DNA of 44,920 bases, from positions 1 to 44,920 of the forward strand of contig CALSCP010001887.1 of assembly GCA_943704425.1 (NCBI GenBank). The letters are read 5' to 3'. This document shows, piece after piece, positions 22,485-32,335 of the stretch. How positions within the stretch are numbered: position 1 is the first letter of the stretch; every line of letters starts with the position of its first letter. The DNA comes from Ministeria vibrans ATCC 50519. Its lineage: Eukaryota; Protista; Filasterea. Position numbers and translations under genes: made by a program. A model generated the notes under the pieces. It was not told where the DNA came from and did not search any database. It saw only the letters and a list, made by a program, of their open reading frames with translations.

Positions 22485-23063
22485 TCACGCTCTTGGTCGC
22501 AGCCCTGATCCGACGATGACAGCCATGCTGCTGCCTTCAACCGAAAGACTAAAGGCAGGAGAGACGCGCACGTGCTCCAGCCGGGCATTCGTGAGGAACG
22601 CAAGGCACTGCGGTTGCGAAAAGCCAAAGCCCTCTGCTCCCTCTCCTCCCTCTCCTGACGCCTCCCAATCCCAATGAACAAAGAGCCCGCCGGGCGCAAG
22701 GAGGCGACTGAGGCGTGCAACCGTTGCGCCTGCGTCATCGACGAACGAGAGCACACTCGACGCGACAATCACACTGAACTTGTCCGTCAGACTCTCGAGC
22801 GAATTCACCGTCTCAACATTTGCCAAATTCTTAGCCGTCACTTGCTTCAACATTTCCGTCGACGTGTCCATCGCTACCACGCGCTGCGCCCGCTTCGAAA
22901 GCATTGCAGTCAATACTCCGCTTCCGCAGCCAAAGTCAAGGACCGTCTCCACTGGGACACGTCGCTGCGCCACTTCGCGCTCAAGGGACGAATACGCCAA
23001 CTCGGCGTACGCGTGCACTTGTGCGTTGTCCTCCCACGTGGCCGCCTCGTCGTCCCAATTCAT
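22485..23063 (-). CDS. Intronless class I SAM-dependent methyltransferase
   Basis: Motif I VLDFGCGSG, VVAMDTSTEML, VIVASSVLSFV and LAPGGLFVHWDW. Confidence 0.88.
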   Translation of the reverse strand: MNWDDEAATWEDNAQVHAYAELAYSSLEREVAQRRVPVETVLDFGCGSGVLTAMLSKRAQRVVAMDTSTEMLKQVTAKNLANVETVNSLESLTDKFSVIVASSVLSFVDDAGATVARLSRLLAPGGLFVHWDWEASGEGGEGAEGFGFSQPQCLAFLTNARLEHVRVSPAFSLSVEGSSMAVIVGSGLRPRA

Positions 23064-23304: not shown

Positions 23305-26300
23305 TCAGGGACCGGGAACAACAGCAGGCACAACACCATTGCCGGTGCGGTAGATCAGAATGTCGCCGTCGTTCGTTGCGCCGTCCCACTCACTCCAAAT
23401 GCGACCCACAGACAAAGACTGTTTGATACGCGGATCGAGTGGCTGTAGACGACGACACAGCTCAACCGCCGAGATCACCCTCTCCCCTGCTTCAAATACC
23501 CTCTGCTTGGGTCCCAGTGCGTCCACCAGCAGCTGTGTTAACATCGTTCGCTTCTTGTCACACCACGCCGGTGCGTCCTTGATCGTACTCGTGATCATCT
23601 GCCGTCCATGACCCGCCACAGGCGCACCCTGCCGTCCCATCGTCAGCTTCTGCTCGACACGCAGTGCTCCCGCGCTGCAGAAATCACACACCACAAGTAC
23701 ACTGCACCCGCGCCACTCCACCTCATCCTGAAGTATTTGGTAGAGAGAGGCCAATGAGAAGCGAGTGACTCGTCCACCAAGCGTCGTCTGCGCATCACTC
23801 AACAAAAGTCCTCCTTTGCTGTCCTCCACGCCATGACCCAATAGGTGCACGACAAGCAGCGTGTCTTCGCCGGCACTCGTACCCACATCCTGTGCAAGCG
23901 CCCGTGCTGCAACCGTGATCGCGCTTTTGGTCACCCGGTCTCCCTGGTGTCGGTCAACAACAGTGCGCACTTTGAAATTCCGATTGGTCCACAGTTCAGC
24001 AAGCTTGTCGACACTGCGGACGACGCCGGGCAAACTGGGATACCCTTCAAGCACAGTATTGACCTTCCTGCCATACCGACTCACCCCAATAATCAATGCT
24101 GCCGCGTGGGTGTACACTGGAGAAGCACATGTAGCTATATAAATAAAAATCAGTGAAAGTGCATATTTTCGCATTCATACCATTTGGCTGTGCGGCCACC
24201 CACCACTCTTCCAGTCGCTCGTTGCACACTCGCTCGCCAGGATGCGCTGCCATCTCCGCCCGCACACTCTCCATTTGTCGGTAGTGCGCCGGTGTACGTG
24301 CAACTTCTTTTGGTGGGAACAGCGGTGACTCGCTCTTGAGTGGGTGGGCCGGCACAACCACAGGAGTGCCACGCCATCCCCATCGCAGTGACCGCGTCTG
24401 CTCACACACCTCCACACAAATCTGCTTCACAGTGCGCTGCACCCGATCTGCGTCACTGTCGTCCATCACGTCAATGCGCACAAACGACTCGTTGGCATTG
24501 AGCCGCACTCGCACAGGCGCACACCCCGCCATCGTCATGGCATTGGTGCATCGCTGTGTCGCCCGGATTGGACTGTTGAGCAGCGACGTGCGCCACAACG
24601 CCACCATCAGCAGATGAAACGTCGCAAGCGAGACGGGAAGCAGCTCGTCGTTGACAAACTGGAACAGGAAGAGCTGAGCGGGCACAACGACAGGAATGTC
24701 GAGGAAGGCAGCGTGGTGGGGAAGAAGCATGGGCACAAACAGACGGTCGTCGCGACGGAGAGCAAGACATAGTCGCTCAAGAGAGAGCATGAAGGAGGGA
24801 ACATCGGTGACATCGGCGCCAGCAAGGAGGGGAACAAGGTCAGGCTCGGGTGCAGGAAGAGAGTCAATGACAGGTTCGGAGGGATGAGAAGGTACGCTGT
24901 GGCGGTCAGACTCAAGCTCGGAACTCGACGGCTTGTCAAAAGCTCGGAACAGTTTTGCCCAGAACGAGAGAGTCTTTGTAGACTCAGAGGGCACAGCGAC
25001 AGGCGACGGCACAGGCTCGGCAGGAGGTGACACTGTTTGTACTTCCACCTCAGCCTCACGGGAAACAGCAAAGAGCTCTCCAGCACGACTGGACGGCGCA
25101 GTCCACACCAACCACTCCGCTACCTCCGCCGGAAACCCACTCTCAGACTGCTCTTTCGACGCGTCCAGCTCGCCCAGAAGCCGCGTCGTCCGCTGTATTC
25201 CATCGTCTGCGTGCTCCACTCCAGCTGCAGTCACCTCGCGCAACATCGTCTGCGCTCGCTTGCTCGTTGCGCGTCCCCACTGCGCCATCACCACCGAGCA
25301 CAACAGTTCCAGCGCTCCAATCAGTCGCGGCACATCAAACACAATCGTGTCCGTCCCCTTCACAACCTCACTCGTCGCATCCTCACGACACACCAGAATG
25401 TCCGCAGCACTCTCAAGATACGGTACAAGACCCTCTCGTATCGCACTCTCACTCGCCAACATCCCCCCCAGTCGCACCACCGGATCGTCGTTCAGCTCCA
25501 GTCCGTCCAGTGAACTCACACTCGACAGCAGCGGCACACGTCCCATTCGCGCCCATCGTCCAATCAGATCCTGTGCCGCCACAAACTCAAGCGGCAGTGT
25601 GCGATTACGCACAGCCTTGTACATCGCCGTGCTCACTGCATCCAGTCCAACTCGCTCACGGCTGCCCACCTGAAAAAACGGCACACCCCGTGTCTCGCGT
25701 GGCATCATCAGATGACTGCCAAGCACAGGTCCGACCAATCGCAAAATCTCACGCGAAACAAGCGAAACCAGATCGTCAGGGATAGTGTTCTCGGCGAACG
25801 TGTCAATGTGAGTGCCGACAATGATGACGCGGAAGTACGACTTGGCCGTGGTGGGCACCTGATGTGCAATGATGTCCGCCCACTTCGACAGGTGCTCGTA
25901 CTGTCGTTGCGCCTTGAGAGCATCGTTCATGACAGACAGGTCAAAGACAAGCACATACACCGACTCGGAGCCCATGAACAGTGCTGGAAGTGAATCGTAC
26001 ATCGACTCACCTGTCGGCAAAAACAGATCAATATTCGTCAGCACTTGCACAGGAAATGACTCCACTTTGTCTTACCTGCAAAATCAAAGGTGTCTATGTC
26101 TACGTGCTCTTCACGCAGCTCGCTCTCCAACAGTCCTCGCACAAATGCCATCTCCGTTGACATTGTGGGCTCAGCCGACGGTGCGACTGTGGGCGCGTCA
26201 CGAGATGGTGCACTGCTCACACTCGCTGGTCCAGCGTCTGCATGCGGAGCTGAAGTAGTAGGTGCAGCTGTGGTTGATGGGTGGTGAGGATCAGCCGCGT

Positions 26301-28199
26301 GGGATGGGCCAGCTGCCTCCTCATCAGCGCTGCTCGTGTCCTCCGCCACTTCCCCTTCCTTCTCCTCCGTCTTCACCCCCATCACACTCCTCAGATGAAA
26401 CTCATCCACCGGCACACTCACAAACACCCTCATTCCCTCGTGGTAAACCATCCGCAGTTTGTGCAGGCGCGTTGCCACCGACCGGTCCTCTTCGCCCGGC
26501 AGTGTCTCGCCCCTCAGCGCAGCCACCAGAGCAGTCTTGCCCGCCTCCGTCGCACCCAAAAACAGCACTTTGATCGACCGACTCACCACTGACCCACGAG
26601 CCAGTGCCGCAGAGAACGCAATGTCGGAAGGACGCAGAATGACACTGAAAGAAGAAAAGCGAGTCAATGAGTACTACATCGGTGCATTCTGTTGGATGCA
26701 GTTACGGAATGTTCAGCTCATGTGTGGGCCATTGTGCCTCACTTCCGTCTTCACAGTGCGCAATGAGTGTCTTTCCATCCGACGACAACTCAATCGCTGT
26801 AATGGTGCTACATGTTCAATACGAGGTCAGTTACACACGTACAAATAGTGTGTTTCGTACCTGTCTGTCGCACTGAGTGTCTTGAGCTGTGTTCCCTTTG
26901 CAACGCTCAGTACTTTCAAGATGTTATTTGAACCATGGAAAATGGTCTTTCCATCACGAGAGACACACACTCGTCGAAAACCGCTGAACACAAAAAACAA
27001 ATGTGTCATCTTACAATCTCAATCTTGTTTTTGCTTTGATTGTGTACTCTGAAAAGTCCACAAAAGTGCGCACACACTCTCCCGAATGCACATTCCACAC
27101 TCTGACTCCGTCAGACCCACAACTGACCACATGCGACCCATCAGAGCTATACACTGCTGATGCGACACCACTAAACCAAAATCCAGTCAGTCACTTCCAT
27201 TTCTCTCTTCCCATTCTCATACCCAAAATGACCAGTCAGTGTTTTTGTGCACTCTCCACTAACACTTGACCATAGCTTGATTGTCTTGTCTCCCGAAGCA
27301 CTGAGAATGGTCTTTCCATCGAGTGAGAATCGCACTGACCAAACCCACCTACAAATCCAATTCCATTCCAAATCCAATTCCCATTCACTCTCTTTCTCTT
27401 ACCCTTCGTGTCCCTTAAATGTCTTTTCGCACTCTTTCCTCTCAATGTTCCACAACTTCACTGTCTTGTCAGCTGAGCCACTCAGTGCTTTCTTTTCATC
27501 CGGTGAGAATTGCACATCCAACACATAACTACAACAAGAGTGAAGATCAACTCACACAAACACTGAGTCACAATCAATCGTACACTAAGTGTCCCTCTAA
27601 TGTGACTTTGCACTCTTCTCTTTCAATGTCCCACACTTTCACTGTCCCGTCACCAGAACCACTCAGTGCCTTTTTGCCATTGCGAGAGAACACGCCAGAA
27701 TACACATGGCTAAAACAAAAAATCACAACAGATTCCACGAGTGAACATTTCTTACTCTTTGTGTCCTTTCAGTGTCTTTTTGCACTCTCCACTCTCAATG
27801 TTCCACACTTTGAGTGTTTTGTCCCACGAAGCACTCAGAACACTCTTTCCATCGCATGAAACATCGACAGTGTAAATCACACTACGAATAACAAACAAAC
27901 AGTCAAAGTGATCCCAGCCAAAAAGTGTCCACTCACCTTGTGTGTCCTTTCAGGTTACGCACTAATGTTTGGTCTTTGGTCCTCCACACTTTCAGCTCTC
28001 CATCCCCTCCTCCACTGATAATCGACGTCCCATCAGGTGTCACTGCCACACCGCAAATGCCCTTGCGGTGTCCTTCGATCGACGCCAGAGGACACTCAAT
28101 CTGATCAGTTCCCGTCTCACTCTCACCAAACAGAATCACTCTGTTTGTGTGCGGATCCGCATACGCAACAGCACACTCGCCGATGCGCACGAACGGCAT
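23305..28199 (-). CDS. WD40 - Roc GTPase - COR - caspase-like (peptidase C14) multidomain Roco protein, 11 exons, ~1441 aa
   Basis: Exons 28199-27937, 27881-27756, 27709-27584, 27528-27403, 27348-27223, 27170-27048, 26983-26861, 26807-26706, 26644-26076, 26010-24181 and 24116-23305 join in frame through GT-AG introns (4326 nt). WD40: GH...W repeats. Roc: [18 protein letters not shown]|[24 protein letters not shown]-like: [17 protein letters not shown]14: [22 protein letters not shown]. Confidence 0.88.
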
Positions 28200-29011: not shown

Positions 29012-32000
29012 TCACTTCTTCTCGCCGTACTTTTGCTTGCGCAGGTCGGTCAAGTGACGACGGGCATTCTCTAGGACTGTCTCCGCCTCAAGCACACGCA
29101 TCTGGGCCTCAATTTCGGCGGCCTGGTTCGCCTTGACGCTCTTGGACGTAGCTTCCCCCCGCTGCGGCTGGATGATGCGCACTGTCTGGCACAGTTCGTC
29201 GAGATCCTCGCCCACACGACGACCACAGTCGGCAAGTGTCGACTGCTTACCCTTGTCCGGACACTTGTTGCCACTGGCGAGCACGAGCTGTTGCACACTT
29301 CCGTTGACAATCTTGGAGGCAGCAATGACCGCTTCGAGCTTCTTATCGCCCGCCGCCGACTCCTTGGCAGTGCGACACAGGTTCTGCACACTTTCCGCAA
29401 CCACCGTTGCACAGCTCACCAGACCCTGAGCCCATGTTCCGTCGTCAAAGTATGCGTTGTCGCTTTTGGCCAGTTTCAGACCGGCTTCATCAATGGCCTA
29501 AAAAACAACACAAAAATTAATGAGTGTATTTTTTCGAGGGTTTATTGTGGACTGTACCTTTTGACAGTTGTTTGCGGCCTCCACAAGATCACCAGTAGAC
29601 GATCCAATGCGACGAACGGCGTCAAAGAGAGCGCGCTCAAGCTCGGACGCGGGCTTGTCGGGGGAGCCGGACAAGTCGAGCGATTGCATCGCCAGACGAA
29701 TCGAGTTCTGCACCATGTCCATTTCCGACTGAATCAACGCCTTGGCTGTCTTGCGTTGTCGCTCAATTGCGTTCTTTTCGTTCTCTTGCGCTGCTAGTTC
29801 CGCCGCGGCGCGAGTTTCAGCAATGGCACGAGCGACCGCCTCGCGATGCTCCTCCGTGAGCCTGTTGAGGTGCAGCTTGTGTTCCTGGCTCAGTCGCGTG
29901 CGTTGCTGTTCATGCTCGGCCATAAGCTGAGCTGTTGTCTGTTGCGCCACTGCCGCCTTACGCTCCTCCTCGGCGCGCTTCTGCAACAACTCCGCCTCGT
30001 GTGCTTTGGCCAAGGCGGCGTGGCGGAGTGCCTCGGCGTCGGCCACCGCCTCTGTTGCATCAAGAATGTCAATGAGTGCCTTGGCAATGTCGGCACCAGC
30101 AGCACCTACAGCATCGGCCGACGGGGGTGGCATGGTCTGCACCAACTGAGCCAGTGACTGTGCCTGCTCAACACAGTGCTGTACGGCACCCGCCAGCAAC
30201 ACGCGGTCGCTGGGATCGCTCACGGCATGCACCGTCTCCGTTGCAAGGTCGACAAGGCCACTGAGGTGACCCACAACAGCATCGAGGGCTGTGTCACCCT
30301 CGTCAAAGAGCTGCCCGTCCACATGGCTAACAGTGGCTAACACGAGAGCCTTGCTGCCGGACGACACCACCTCGGCCTGATCGACAAGGAGCAGACGCCA
30401 CGCGTCAAACTGCTCCGTGTCGACGGCAAAGCCCGCACGCTCCACCGTACCGACGAGACGCGTCGCGCGCGCCACCAAATCTTTAAAGCGCGGTGCATAG
30501 AACGCACCGGCGGCACAGCGACTGTCGGTGCCGACGGCCATGTCGTGGAGCTCGGGCGGGATGATGTCCACATCAAACTTGACTGGGTCGACTTCGGGAA
30601 GAGGGTCGAGGTCGCAGAAGTCGGCAGGAATGAGCCCCACAATGCCCTTGGCGTTGCGTGCGAGGTACCAGTCGGGGGGCAATTCGGGACCTTCCATCTG
30701 CAGCACGAAGAGACGGTCGCCCTCGCGGGTGTTGAGCTCTTGCGGGCGTTGCGTGACGTGCTTGTACTTGCAAGTGGCCTGACGGGCAGGGTCGCGCAGG
30801 TGGCCCAGGATGGAGCGCATAGCGACGCGACGTTGCTCCTGCATGGTCGTGGCCACCTTGGACAACACAGAGGCACCCTGCAAGAACAAGTCACGTTCGC
30901 TGGTCACCAGGTCCACCAGACCCTGAAACTGCTCGTCCTCGAGGCGGCACGTGAAGTTCAGAATCAATTCGTAGGCGGCTTTGGACGACTGGTCATACTA
31001 CGGAGCGATAGAAAGGTCGAGTAAATACAGAGAGTATACACTATTTGATGGGAGGGAGTGGCGAACACCTTTTCAATAAGTTCCGTGACGCGTTCTTCGT
31101 TCTTGCGGACCGTAGCCGGGTCGGCCTTTGAGCTACGTGCGTAGCTCTCCGTTTCGCTGCGCAGTCGGTCGAGCAGCTTTCGGTCCGACTCGACGGCCTT
31201 GATAGCCTTGGCAATAGCGGGCATGTCGCCGCGACGCATGTGTTGGTCCATGGGGTAAAGAAAGAACTCACGGGCGTGGCGCTCGAAGGCGACCTGGTGT
31301 GTGGCTATGGAGAGGTGAGCCTCGGAGCAGACGCCATACGCGACGCCCAGCGAGTTGTCTGTGCCCAGCACTCCTGCCATGTCGCCCAGCACACGTCCCA
31401 GCTTGCCAATGGCCACACGGTCCGGTCCGCTCGTCTTGAGCAGGTCTGTCTTGCCGAACGAGAGCATGCCGTCTTGCGCCGCCTTGGGGTGGAAGTACTT
31501 GAGCGTTCGTGTCTCGACGTCCTTGTGGTGCTCCTGGAGGCGTTTCAACAAAGACTACAGGGAAGCACACACATAGATGTATAATGTGAGTACGAGAAAG
31601 AAACAAAGAAAAGAAGCAAAAAAAAAGAAAGAAGAAGATACCTCTTGTTCGAGGATGGACGCGTACTCAGCCTTCATTTTGGACAGCGGTTCGGTTCGCG
31701 AGAGCTTCTCGGCGACAGACTGCAGGGAACGCCAAGCGAGACGGTGAGACGATGACAAGGAGCGAGGGGAGTGAATGGGTTGCTTGTACCTGATGGAGAA
31801 TGGCAAAGGCGCGGCCGACGGCCATGGTGGTGGAGAGGGGACGACTGCCAGCGTTGGATTTGGCTTTTGAGGGCGATTCCGTGGGGTGCAGGAGGAGCTT
31901 TGTTGTGGTTGCGCCTTTGGTCTTGCGTGAGAGCATTTGTGGAGAGGACGGGGTGCTGCTGATGGCAGGGCGTTTCTCGGCGTCTGCGCTGGCGCTCTTT

Positions 32001-32335
32001 TCGGCATCGGCGGTTGCGATTGTCGGTGCGGTTGTGCTGCGCTCGATCGAGGGCCGATGCGCCGCGGTGCCGGCAGACGCGGCCGACGTCGACGGTGCGG
32101 CTGCTGGCTTGGGCACAGGCGAGGTGGCGGGCTGCGGAACGGGGGGAGGCGGGCGAGTAGGAACTGTGGAAAAGGGTTTTAAGGGAAGGGGTTCCGATGA
32201 CAAGGAAGACGAAAGGAGAGACGGAAAGGCTGGGGAGATCTTACGAGGCTTTGTTGGGGAGAAAGTTGGAGGTGGGGCGGGCGGCGAAGAGGGCGGTCCG
32301 GGCGCCGGACGACCTGGAGGGCATTTTTTGTCCAT
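29012..32335 (-). CDS. Pro-rich - BAR - SH3 - helical/coiled-coil - I/LWEQ (talin/HIP1R-type actin-binding) protein, multi-exon
   Basis: Endophilin-like BAR (LGVAYGVC...FLYPM...DMPAIAKAIKAVESDRKLLD...EDEQFQGLVDLV). SH3 (YKHVTQRPQELNTREGD...DWYLA...GLIPADF). I/LWEQ (DDGTWAQGLVSCA..VA, VIAASK.V..SVQQLV.AS, EIEAQMRVLEAE..LENARRHLTDLRKQKY). The two internal splice joins I checked are in frame. Confidence 0.8.

Follow-up and report, generated by a model that had tools for sequence, protein, structure and literature searches.

Whether a eukaryotic gene can join a repeat sensor, a GTPase switch and a protease in a single chain is the question raised by a locus on the minus strand of a 44,920-nucleotide (nt) contig of the filasterean Ministeria vibrans ATCC 50519 (CALSCP010001887.1; this whole stretch of DNA is referred to as the window). 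The locus, at 28199–23305, contains a gene with 11 exons and 10 introns, predicted to encode WD40 repeats, a Roc GTPase domain, a COR domain and a C-terminal caspase-fold protease domain. We are highly confident that this is one transcribed gene with a single-polypeptide WD40-Roc-COR-caspase architecture, an arrangement put forward in an initial annotation of the sequence and now supported by transcripts, paralogue comparison, profile matches and predicted folds. For the whole statement, in which this one-gene architecture also functions as a receptor that acts as sensor, switch and protease in defence or cell death, we estimate a probability of roughly 0.6.

Gene model and spliced transcripts

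The gene model was built by reading splice donors and acceptors and was then verified by script. Joined, the exons form a frame of 4,344 nt with the stop, which encodes 1,447 amino acids (aa) without an internal stop codon. All ten introns are of the GT-AG type, with lengths in order of 55, 46, 55, 54, 52, 64, 53, 61, 65 and 46 nt and intron GC contents of 0.26–0.43, in agreement with the ten canonical introns of 46–65 nt of the initial annotation. The single uninterrupted frame claimed there is also retained, although not its length of 4,326 nt, which corresponds to a model using an alternative intron-10 acceptor at 24117 (64 nt instead of 46). The 46-nt form is preferred because the closest paralogue, in its observed spliced junction, is cut at the acceptor corresponding to 24135 and not at that corresponding to 24117. 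Introns 1–8 are all in phase 2, and introns 1–7 come after the GHxx sequence that ends a WD40 repeat, so that one WD40 blade is encoded per exon. The raw open reading frames (ORFs) at the locus are a string of short WD40-like frames together with longer ones of 209 aa (containing a P-loop), 672 aa and 289 aa. In a mechanical search, no fewer than ten frame-preserving GT-AG introns were required. This search gave no solutions under a strict donor filter, and its models with the fewest or shortest GT-AG introns were rejected as spurious, with cuts falling within WD40 repeats.

Sequences from public runs were compared with the model as contigs. Runs X1, X5 and X6, which we presume to be RNA, carry joints that skip exactly the modelled introns, while the DNA-like run X19 does not. 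Exact spliced joints are found for intron 9, intron 7 (26808–26860), intron 3 (27529–27583) and intron 2 (27710–27755), the intron 7 joint being present in three runs and that of intron 2 in two. Introns 1, 4, 5, 6 and 8 are matched by joints that carry a few variant letters, consistent with alleles or close paralogues. The joint for intron 6 is the 64-nt version, ruling out an in-frame 31-nt alternative. The low-complexity insert of exon 9 is coding, because RNA-like contigs run through it unspliced, and at the 5′ end an RNA-like contig covers 28077–28262 around exon 1.

The joint between the COR exon and the caspase exon bears on an alternative in which the locus holds two genes, a WD40-Roc-COR gene ending near 24181 and a separate caspase-like gene starting from an ATG at 24174. 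The 289-aa ORF (23305–24174) does have its own in-frame ATG, with an N-terminus that is hydrophobic and signal-peptide-like, and none of the 15 joints listed is that of the window's own intron 10; introns 1–9 of the eleven-exon transcript predicted in the initial annotation are shown by spliced contigs from the RNA-like runs. Against two genes, the ATG at 24174 sits within a 46-nt AT-rich GT-AG intron, and in the three closest paralogues the equivalent intron is 44 nt long, which places the same ATG out of frame; were this stretch coding, the 2-nt difference would be a frameshift. The wider family agrees with this. Around exon-10 matches, 24 paralogous loci were retrieved, and in these a segment resembling exon 11 lies downstream on the same strand after 50–296 nt. 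A GT-AG intron joins the COR and caspase frames without a stop in 23 of these 24 loci (lengths 44, 51, 52, 54, 55, 57, 63, 64, 68, 79, 83/84 and 284 nt; consensus-like donors in 20), and an in-frame ATG ahead of the caspase part is missing in 16. In addition, the loose end of an X1 contig at 24196 agrees letter for letter with a spliced form of paralogue C1564, in which exon 10 runs directly into exon 11 and the 44-nt GT...AG intron between them is gone. The 30-mer spanning this spliced junction does not occur in the genome assembly, even with two mismatches allowed. We regard separate genes as extremely improbable and treat the locus as a single gene.

A few paralogues looked at first sight like intronless fusions. 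In C985, C2822 and C437 this reading was rejected, as the continuous ORFs only carry in-frame, stop-free introns, and in C985 and C2822 the intron is still found between the COR and caspase parts. The introns concerned are 57, 84 and 48 nt long in C985, C2822 and C437, respectively; being stop-free multiples of three, they would, if retained, leave the protein full-length and add only a short insert. In C2659, the long ORF that precedes the caspase part is out of frame and hence an artefact.

The runs also differ among themselves. Run X1 has an in-frame 3-nt insertion (GCT) at window position 26296, within the low-complexity insert, and many single-letter variants at 95–99% identity occur across runs from nine studies, which together indicate strain or allele diversity. 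The match of an X6 contig ends at 28199, at the start ATG, and its 63 further letters do not fit, while an X1 contig continues colinear to 28262; this would be explained by an alternative 5′ exon or by a paralogous origin of the X6 contig.

Domain composition of the encoded protein

Domain searches were made with each exon separately. Each of exons 1–6 is matched in Pfam by PF00400 or by a propeller family, with E values from 2e-9 to 6e-3; exon 7 gives a marginal WD40 score, and exon 8 gives no Pfam WD40 match. The approximately seven to eight WD40 repeats noted initially therefore resolve by Pfam into six clear blades, with two more that are degenerate.

The following segment is assigned as a predicted Ras-like Roc GTPase domain with G1, G3 and G4 motifs. 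The G1 P-loop GATEAGKT lies at 26533–26556 and G4 GTHID at 25802–25816; switch I is DRSVATR, and G3 is DFAG, split by intron 9 such that its first bases lie at the 3′ end of exon 9. The GATEAGKT, DFAG and GTHID motifs picked out in the initial annotation are all present in the model. Between switch I and G3 there is a low-complexity insert of about 80–100 aa, rich in Pro, Ser, Thr, Ala and Glu (roughly 26155–26397). Conservation among paralogues is strict, the P-loop being kept in 27 of 27 and FDFA/G (the slash marking the intron) in 26 of 26; GTHID is conserved among them as well. A profile built from 24 paralogues and searched against the PDB has the LRRK2 Roc domain as seven of its eight matches, the best at only E 0.087, and the profile alignment pairs vgTHlD with VGTHLD of LRRK2. 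By VIA-align, residues 14–135 of the exon-10 model superpose on LRRK2 Roc (2zej) with a Z of 9.3.

COR-A and COR-B are predicted directly C-terminal to Roc. The AlphaFold2 model of exon 10, computed on the paralogue alignment, has a mean predicted local distance difference test score (pLDDT) of 81.7 and a predicted template modelling score (pTM) of 0.78, and all 26 of its best Foldseek matches are Roco proteins. VIA-align gives a Z of 14.9 to the RocCOR of C. tepidum (3dpu_B), 14.0 to the isolated C. tepidum COR domain (3dpt_B; 275 residues aligned, model residues 139–607), 12.1 to LRRK1, 11.4 to LRRK2 residues 1398–1868 and 10.3 to M. barkeri Roco2. The linker between COR-A and COR-B (exon residues 319–385, about 24854–25054) is Pro/Ser-rich and disordered, with pLDDT below 50. 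The COR-like segments of the initial annotation are thus borne out by predicted fold (Z 14 to C. tepidum COR), Pfam being silent, and direct sequence searches of the PDB with exons 10 and 11 gave no matches.

Exon 11 belongs to the Peptidase C14 family by the curated Pfam cut-off (PF00656, E 7.4e-10, 39.3 bits against a cut-off of 21.4) and by fold, and is predicted to be a protease. The putative catalytic residues are His1272 (23833–23835, in HLLGHG) and Cys1324 (23677–23679, in DFCSAG), the latter in a motif that resembles the D-x-C-H-S-G of metacaspases and orthocaspases. The predicted structure has the expected strand order, with H100/G101 after strand 3 (E91–99) and C152 after strand 4 (E144–151), and its best Foldseek matches are all caspase-fold proteins, namely MALT1, caspases 1, 4, 6 and 9, metacaspase 9 and GSU0716 (E 6.5e-6 to 5e-4). 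A caspase profile searched against the PDB gave only a marginal match to GSU0716, and the Pfam CHAT family (PF12770) matches exon 11 at only E 0.017. Searched against 1.84 billion representatives, the caspase profile returned only 13 proteins at E ≤ 1e-10, all short fragments, followed by distant bacterial-type Peptidase_C14 multidomain proteins at E 4e-8 to 1e-3. One could also suppose that the caspase-like domain is a non-catalytic pseudo-protease that serves as a scaffold for oligomerization or recruitment, in keeping with a modest Pfam match (39 bits) and a moderate exon-11 model. We consider this very improbable, as none of the 11 aligned paralogues, which reach down to 46% identity, departs from the His, Gly, Asp, Phe and Cys of the motifs HLLGHG and DFC(N/S)(S/A)G. 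The C14 caspase fold with an intact dyad, recognized earlier as LLGHG and CDFC, stands on the profile match, the fold and this invariance.

Table 1. Features of the WD40-Roc-COR-caspase gene in the window
Feature	Coordinates	Strand	Basis or remark
Whole coding region	23305–28199	−	Stop at 23305–23307; frame check, spliced contigs, paralogue comparison
Exon 1: start ATG at 28199, N-terminal strand and WD40 blade 1	27937–28199	−	Pfam WD40, E 2.2e-9
Exon 2	27756–27881	−	WD40 blade, scored by Pfam
Exon 3	27584–27709	−	WD40 blade, scored by Pfam
Exon 4	27403–27528	−	WD40 blade, scored by Pfam
Exon 5	27223–27348	−	WD40 blade, scored by Pfam
Exon 6	27048–27170	−	WD40 blade, scored by Pfam
Exon 7	26861–26983	−	WD40 blade, marginal score
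Exon 8	26706–26807	−	Degenerate WD40 blade
Exons 2–8 together	26706–27881	−	Phase-2 intron at the equivalent repeat position ahead of each
Exon 9: N-terminal half of predicted Roc, P-loop GATEAGKT, switch I DRSVATR, low-complexity insert	26076–26644	−	
Intron 9, 65 nt, splitting the Gly codon of G3 DFAG	26011–26075	−	Exact joint in run X1; position kept in paralogues
Exon 10, whole	24181–26010	−	C-terminal half of predicted Roc with predicted COR-A/COR-B
Exon 10, first part: C-terminal half of predicted Roc, switch II, G4 GTHID	25604–26010	−	LRRK2 Roc profile and fold matches
Exon 10, remainder: predicted COR-A and COR-B	24188–25603	−	AlphaFold2 model, Foldseek, VIA-align
Intron 10, 46 nt, GTATGA...ATATAG, between COR exon and caspase exon	24135–24180	−	Frame join, paralogue introns
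Exon 11: Peptidase_C14 caspase-fold domain, stop at 23305–23307	23305–24134	−	Pfam PF00656, fold

The paralogue family and its divergence

The gene is one of about 40 paralogues in the genome. Searches of the 29.7-Mb assembly gave 66 matches for the exon-11 protein, 39 of them at E ≤ 2e-46, and 84 for the exon-10 protein; approximately 39 caspase copies are near full length, and nearly all of these lie just 3′ of a Roc-COR exon. Similarity to the closest copies is unevenly distributed along the gene. At the DNA level, C2659 shares 94% identity with the 5′ 2.7 kb, from WD40 to mid-Roc, and C1564 shares 94% over 0.95 kb, while the caspase exon is only 85–89% identical to these two copies. Overall, the WD40-Roc half is 92–95% identical to C2659, C1564 and C2371, and the COR-B and caspase part 85–89%. 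Synonymous divergence (dS) is about 0.07 in WD40 against 0.24–0.36 in COR and caspase. This mosaic similarity and the uneven dS point to gene conversion or recombination among copies.

Ratios of nonsynonymous to synonymous divergence (dN/dS) are 0.14 for COR, 0.35 for Roc, 0.38–0.40 for caspase, and 0.73 and 1.11 for WD40, the WD40 values coming from two paralogue comparisons that share the window's sequence and not being significantly above 1. Within the five regular 42-residue blades, 19 of the 48 amino-acid differences fall at repeat positions 1, 3 and 19, where 3.4 are expected (binomial p 2.5e-10), and 35 of the 48 fall at positions 1, 3, 19–21 and 41–42. Positions 1, 3 and 19 correspond to the R1-2, R1 and D-1 hotspots of the WD40 top face; the differences from the closest paralogues thus cluster at positions on the top face of the propeller. 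Hypervariable WD40 positions and mosaic paralogues would also suit allorecognition or kin discrimination within the species, comparable to the fungal HET-E/D WD40 receptors, in place of pathogen defence, as would the strain-level variants at 95–99% identity seen across several public runs. The hotspot variability in question is that between paralogues, and we judge this variant of the receptor reading to be quite improbable.

The family has several irregular members and possible relatives. Two Roc-COR paralogues, C491 and C986, have no caspase-like exon downstream and no recognizable Pfam domain within the next 3.5 kb; they may carry other or unrecognized output domains. Immediately upstream of another Roc-COR-caspase gene, a 950-aa ORF (C2822:46581–49433, plus strand) has a Roc-like match (E 5e-4), an NB-ARC match (E 1.7e-8) and DUF7779, so that a single frame seems to encode both a GTPase and a STAND ATPase. 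At the start of the window contig, positions 15–110 on the plus strand match the C-terminal end of the caspase domain (query residues 237–268, 56% identity, E 2.9e-5), probably the edge of another family member cut by the contig end. The same-strand genes that flank the WD40-Roc-COR-caspase gene both look unrelated to it: a 192-aa S-adenosylmethionine-dependent methyltransferase-like ORF (22485–23063, minus strand) lies 241 nt downstream, and a coiled-coil/SH3-type gene (29012–32335, minus strand) lies about 810 nt upstream.

Outside this genome, a profile run against 5.8 billion proteins, with only certain protein lengths visible to it, gave eight matches, all from one ENA metagenome series. 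The metagenome scaffold examined has the same gene order and is 97–98% identical in DNA to two contigs of the genome, so these homologues represent the same species and were rejected as independent support; within this length-limited search, no independent organism with the WD40-Roc-COR-caspase family was found. An ORF on ENA ERZ23497388 scaffold_5695 has a caspase part that is at most 57% identical to any copy in the genome, joined without an intron to a 275-residue upstream region. It was rejected as an independent Roc-COR-caspase protein, as these 275 residues match neither the Roc-COR profile nor Pfam, and may instead be a relative from another organism.

Proposed receptor function and comparison with known systems

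The layout of the protein is the usual Roco order, with WD40 replacing LRR and a protease replacing the kinase. LRRK1, LRRK2 and the Roco proteins of C. tepidum and M. barkeri share the arrangement of repeats, Roc, COR and an output domain, the G4 motif GTH(I/L)D is LRRK2-like, and the predicted Roc-COR fold aligns to Roco proteins over about 240–416 residues at Z 10–15. The window gene differs from these proteins in having a protease in place of a kinase as output and WD40 in place of ANK/LRR as N-terminal repeats, in the low-complexity insert of about 80–100 aa within Roc and in a similarity that remains under the Pfam Roc and COR thresholds. With Apaf-1, NLRs and fungal HET-E/D it shares a repeat sensor, an NTPase switch and a death or protease effector, and the sensor is likewise WD40; a multicopy family with hypervariable WD40 surface positions is also common to STAND receptors and to this family. 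In contrast to these receptors, the switch here is a predicted Ras-like Roc GTPase where they use a NACHT or NB-ARC ATPase, the chain begins with the sensor and ends with the effector, and the protease is built into the polypeptide, with no recruitment through CARD or death domains. No exon of the window gene has a Pfam match to NACHT or NB-ARC; the protein is therefore an NLR analogue and not an NLR. The nearest outside relatives of the protease domain are the bacterial orthocaspases and Peptidase_C14 multidomain proteins, which are often fused to WD40, TPR or CHAT and share a Cys motif of the D-x-C-(H/N)-S-G type. In these bacterial proteins, unlike the window gene, the caspase domain is N-terminal and Roc-COR is absent, and the similarity is remote.

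The closest characterized relative in concept is the Roc-COR-CHAT protease of Runella. The purified protease was shown to cleave and activate a gasdermin, a pore-forming death effector, and needs H796 and C804 (bioRxiv 10.1101/2021.06.07.447441), which provides a precedent. Similar to the window gene, it combines Roc-COR and a caspase-fold protease in a single polypeptide, the protease being C-terminal and having a His/Cys dyad. It differs in being bacterial, in residing in an operon with its gasdermin substrate and in having a CHAT (PF12770) protease and not PF00656; a WD40 propeller is not reported in the figure legend, and it is not a 40-copy family, as opposed to the approximately 40 copies here. 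Roc-COR ("AP-GTPase") modules have also been described in bacterial conflict systems (PMC7159879), and a 2019 review of Roco proteins lists no caspase, protease or peptidase output (PMC6337361). We found no published description of a eukaryotic WD40-Roc-COR-Peptidase_C14 form. The novelty proposed in the initial annotation must accordingly be qualified, since the bacterial Roc-COR-CHAT caspase-like protease is already characterized.

In the proposed mechanism, the top face of the WD40 propeller would bind a ligand, and binding would shift Roc-COR to a different nucleotide or oligomer state, as happens in LRRK2 and C. tepidum Roco. This change would bring together or release the protease domain, which would then cleave its substrates. 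The most likely role would be recognition of non-self or danger leading to defence or regulated cell death, with the family constituting an NLR-like receptor repertoire that uses a GTPase in place of a STAND ATPase. A receptor in immunity or death is made more plausible by the combination of about 40 copies, invariant GTPase motifs and catalytic dyad, mosaic similarity, and differences on the WD40 top face.

The fusion could also be real and yet serve to regulate signalling or the cytoskeleton, as LRRK2 and the Dictyostelium Roco kinases do, with a copy number that reflects ordinary family expansion. Known eukaryotic Roco proteins do act in trafficking, chemotaxis and development (PMC6337361), and a receptor role in infection or cell death is itself deduced from sequence and analogy. 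We think a regulator unlikely: the approximately 40 mosaic copies suggest gene conversion or recombination, differences focus on the WD40 top face while catalytic motifs are invariant, and caspase-type output is tied to death or defence in bacteria, fungi and animals.

Several points weigh against the receptor reading and the architecture on which it builds. Among the families that the initial annotation expected in profile searches, WD40 and Peptidase_C14 are matched, but Roc falls below the Pfam cut-off (18.5 versus 27 bits), and Pfam COR models remain unmatched in exon 10 of the window and in all 24 Roc-COR paralogues. The exon-11 model is moderate (pLDDT 59, pTM 0.71). At the transcript level, the RNA label of runs X1, X5 and X6 is a guess, and the window's own intron 10 is missing from the 15 joints listed. 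The WD40 dN/dS values do not significantly exceed 1 in their two overlapping comparisons. Metacaspase-type proteases are often monomeric, which makes activation by induced proximity an assumption here. A gasdermin profile gave no match in the genome, but the control genomes were silent too, which makes this search uninformative.

For the family as a whole, we tentatively propose, with less confidence than for the window gene, that the approximately 40 genes may form a GTPase-based immune or cell-death repertoire without a STAND ATPase, in which hypervariable WD40 faces would sense non-self and switch on a built-in executioner. Copy number and surface variability point to such a recognition repertoire. 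Most work on Roco GTPases has been done with LRRK2; how its GTPase state is linked to its output is still debated, and a Roc-COR module driving a protease would offer a simple read-out, namely cleavage. The sensor-switch-executioner design of NLRs and apoptosomes would be extended to another class of switch in a eukaryote, and with a unicellular close relative of animals as host, the family would bear on the machinery of death and immunity that predates animals. If the receptor reading is correct, a unicellular lineage close to animals would hold a eukaryotic solution that is independent of NLRs and the apoptosome and parallels them.

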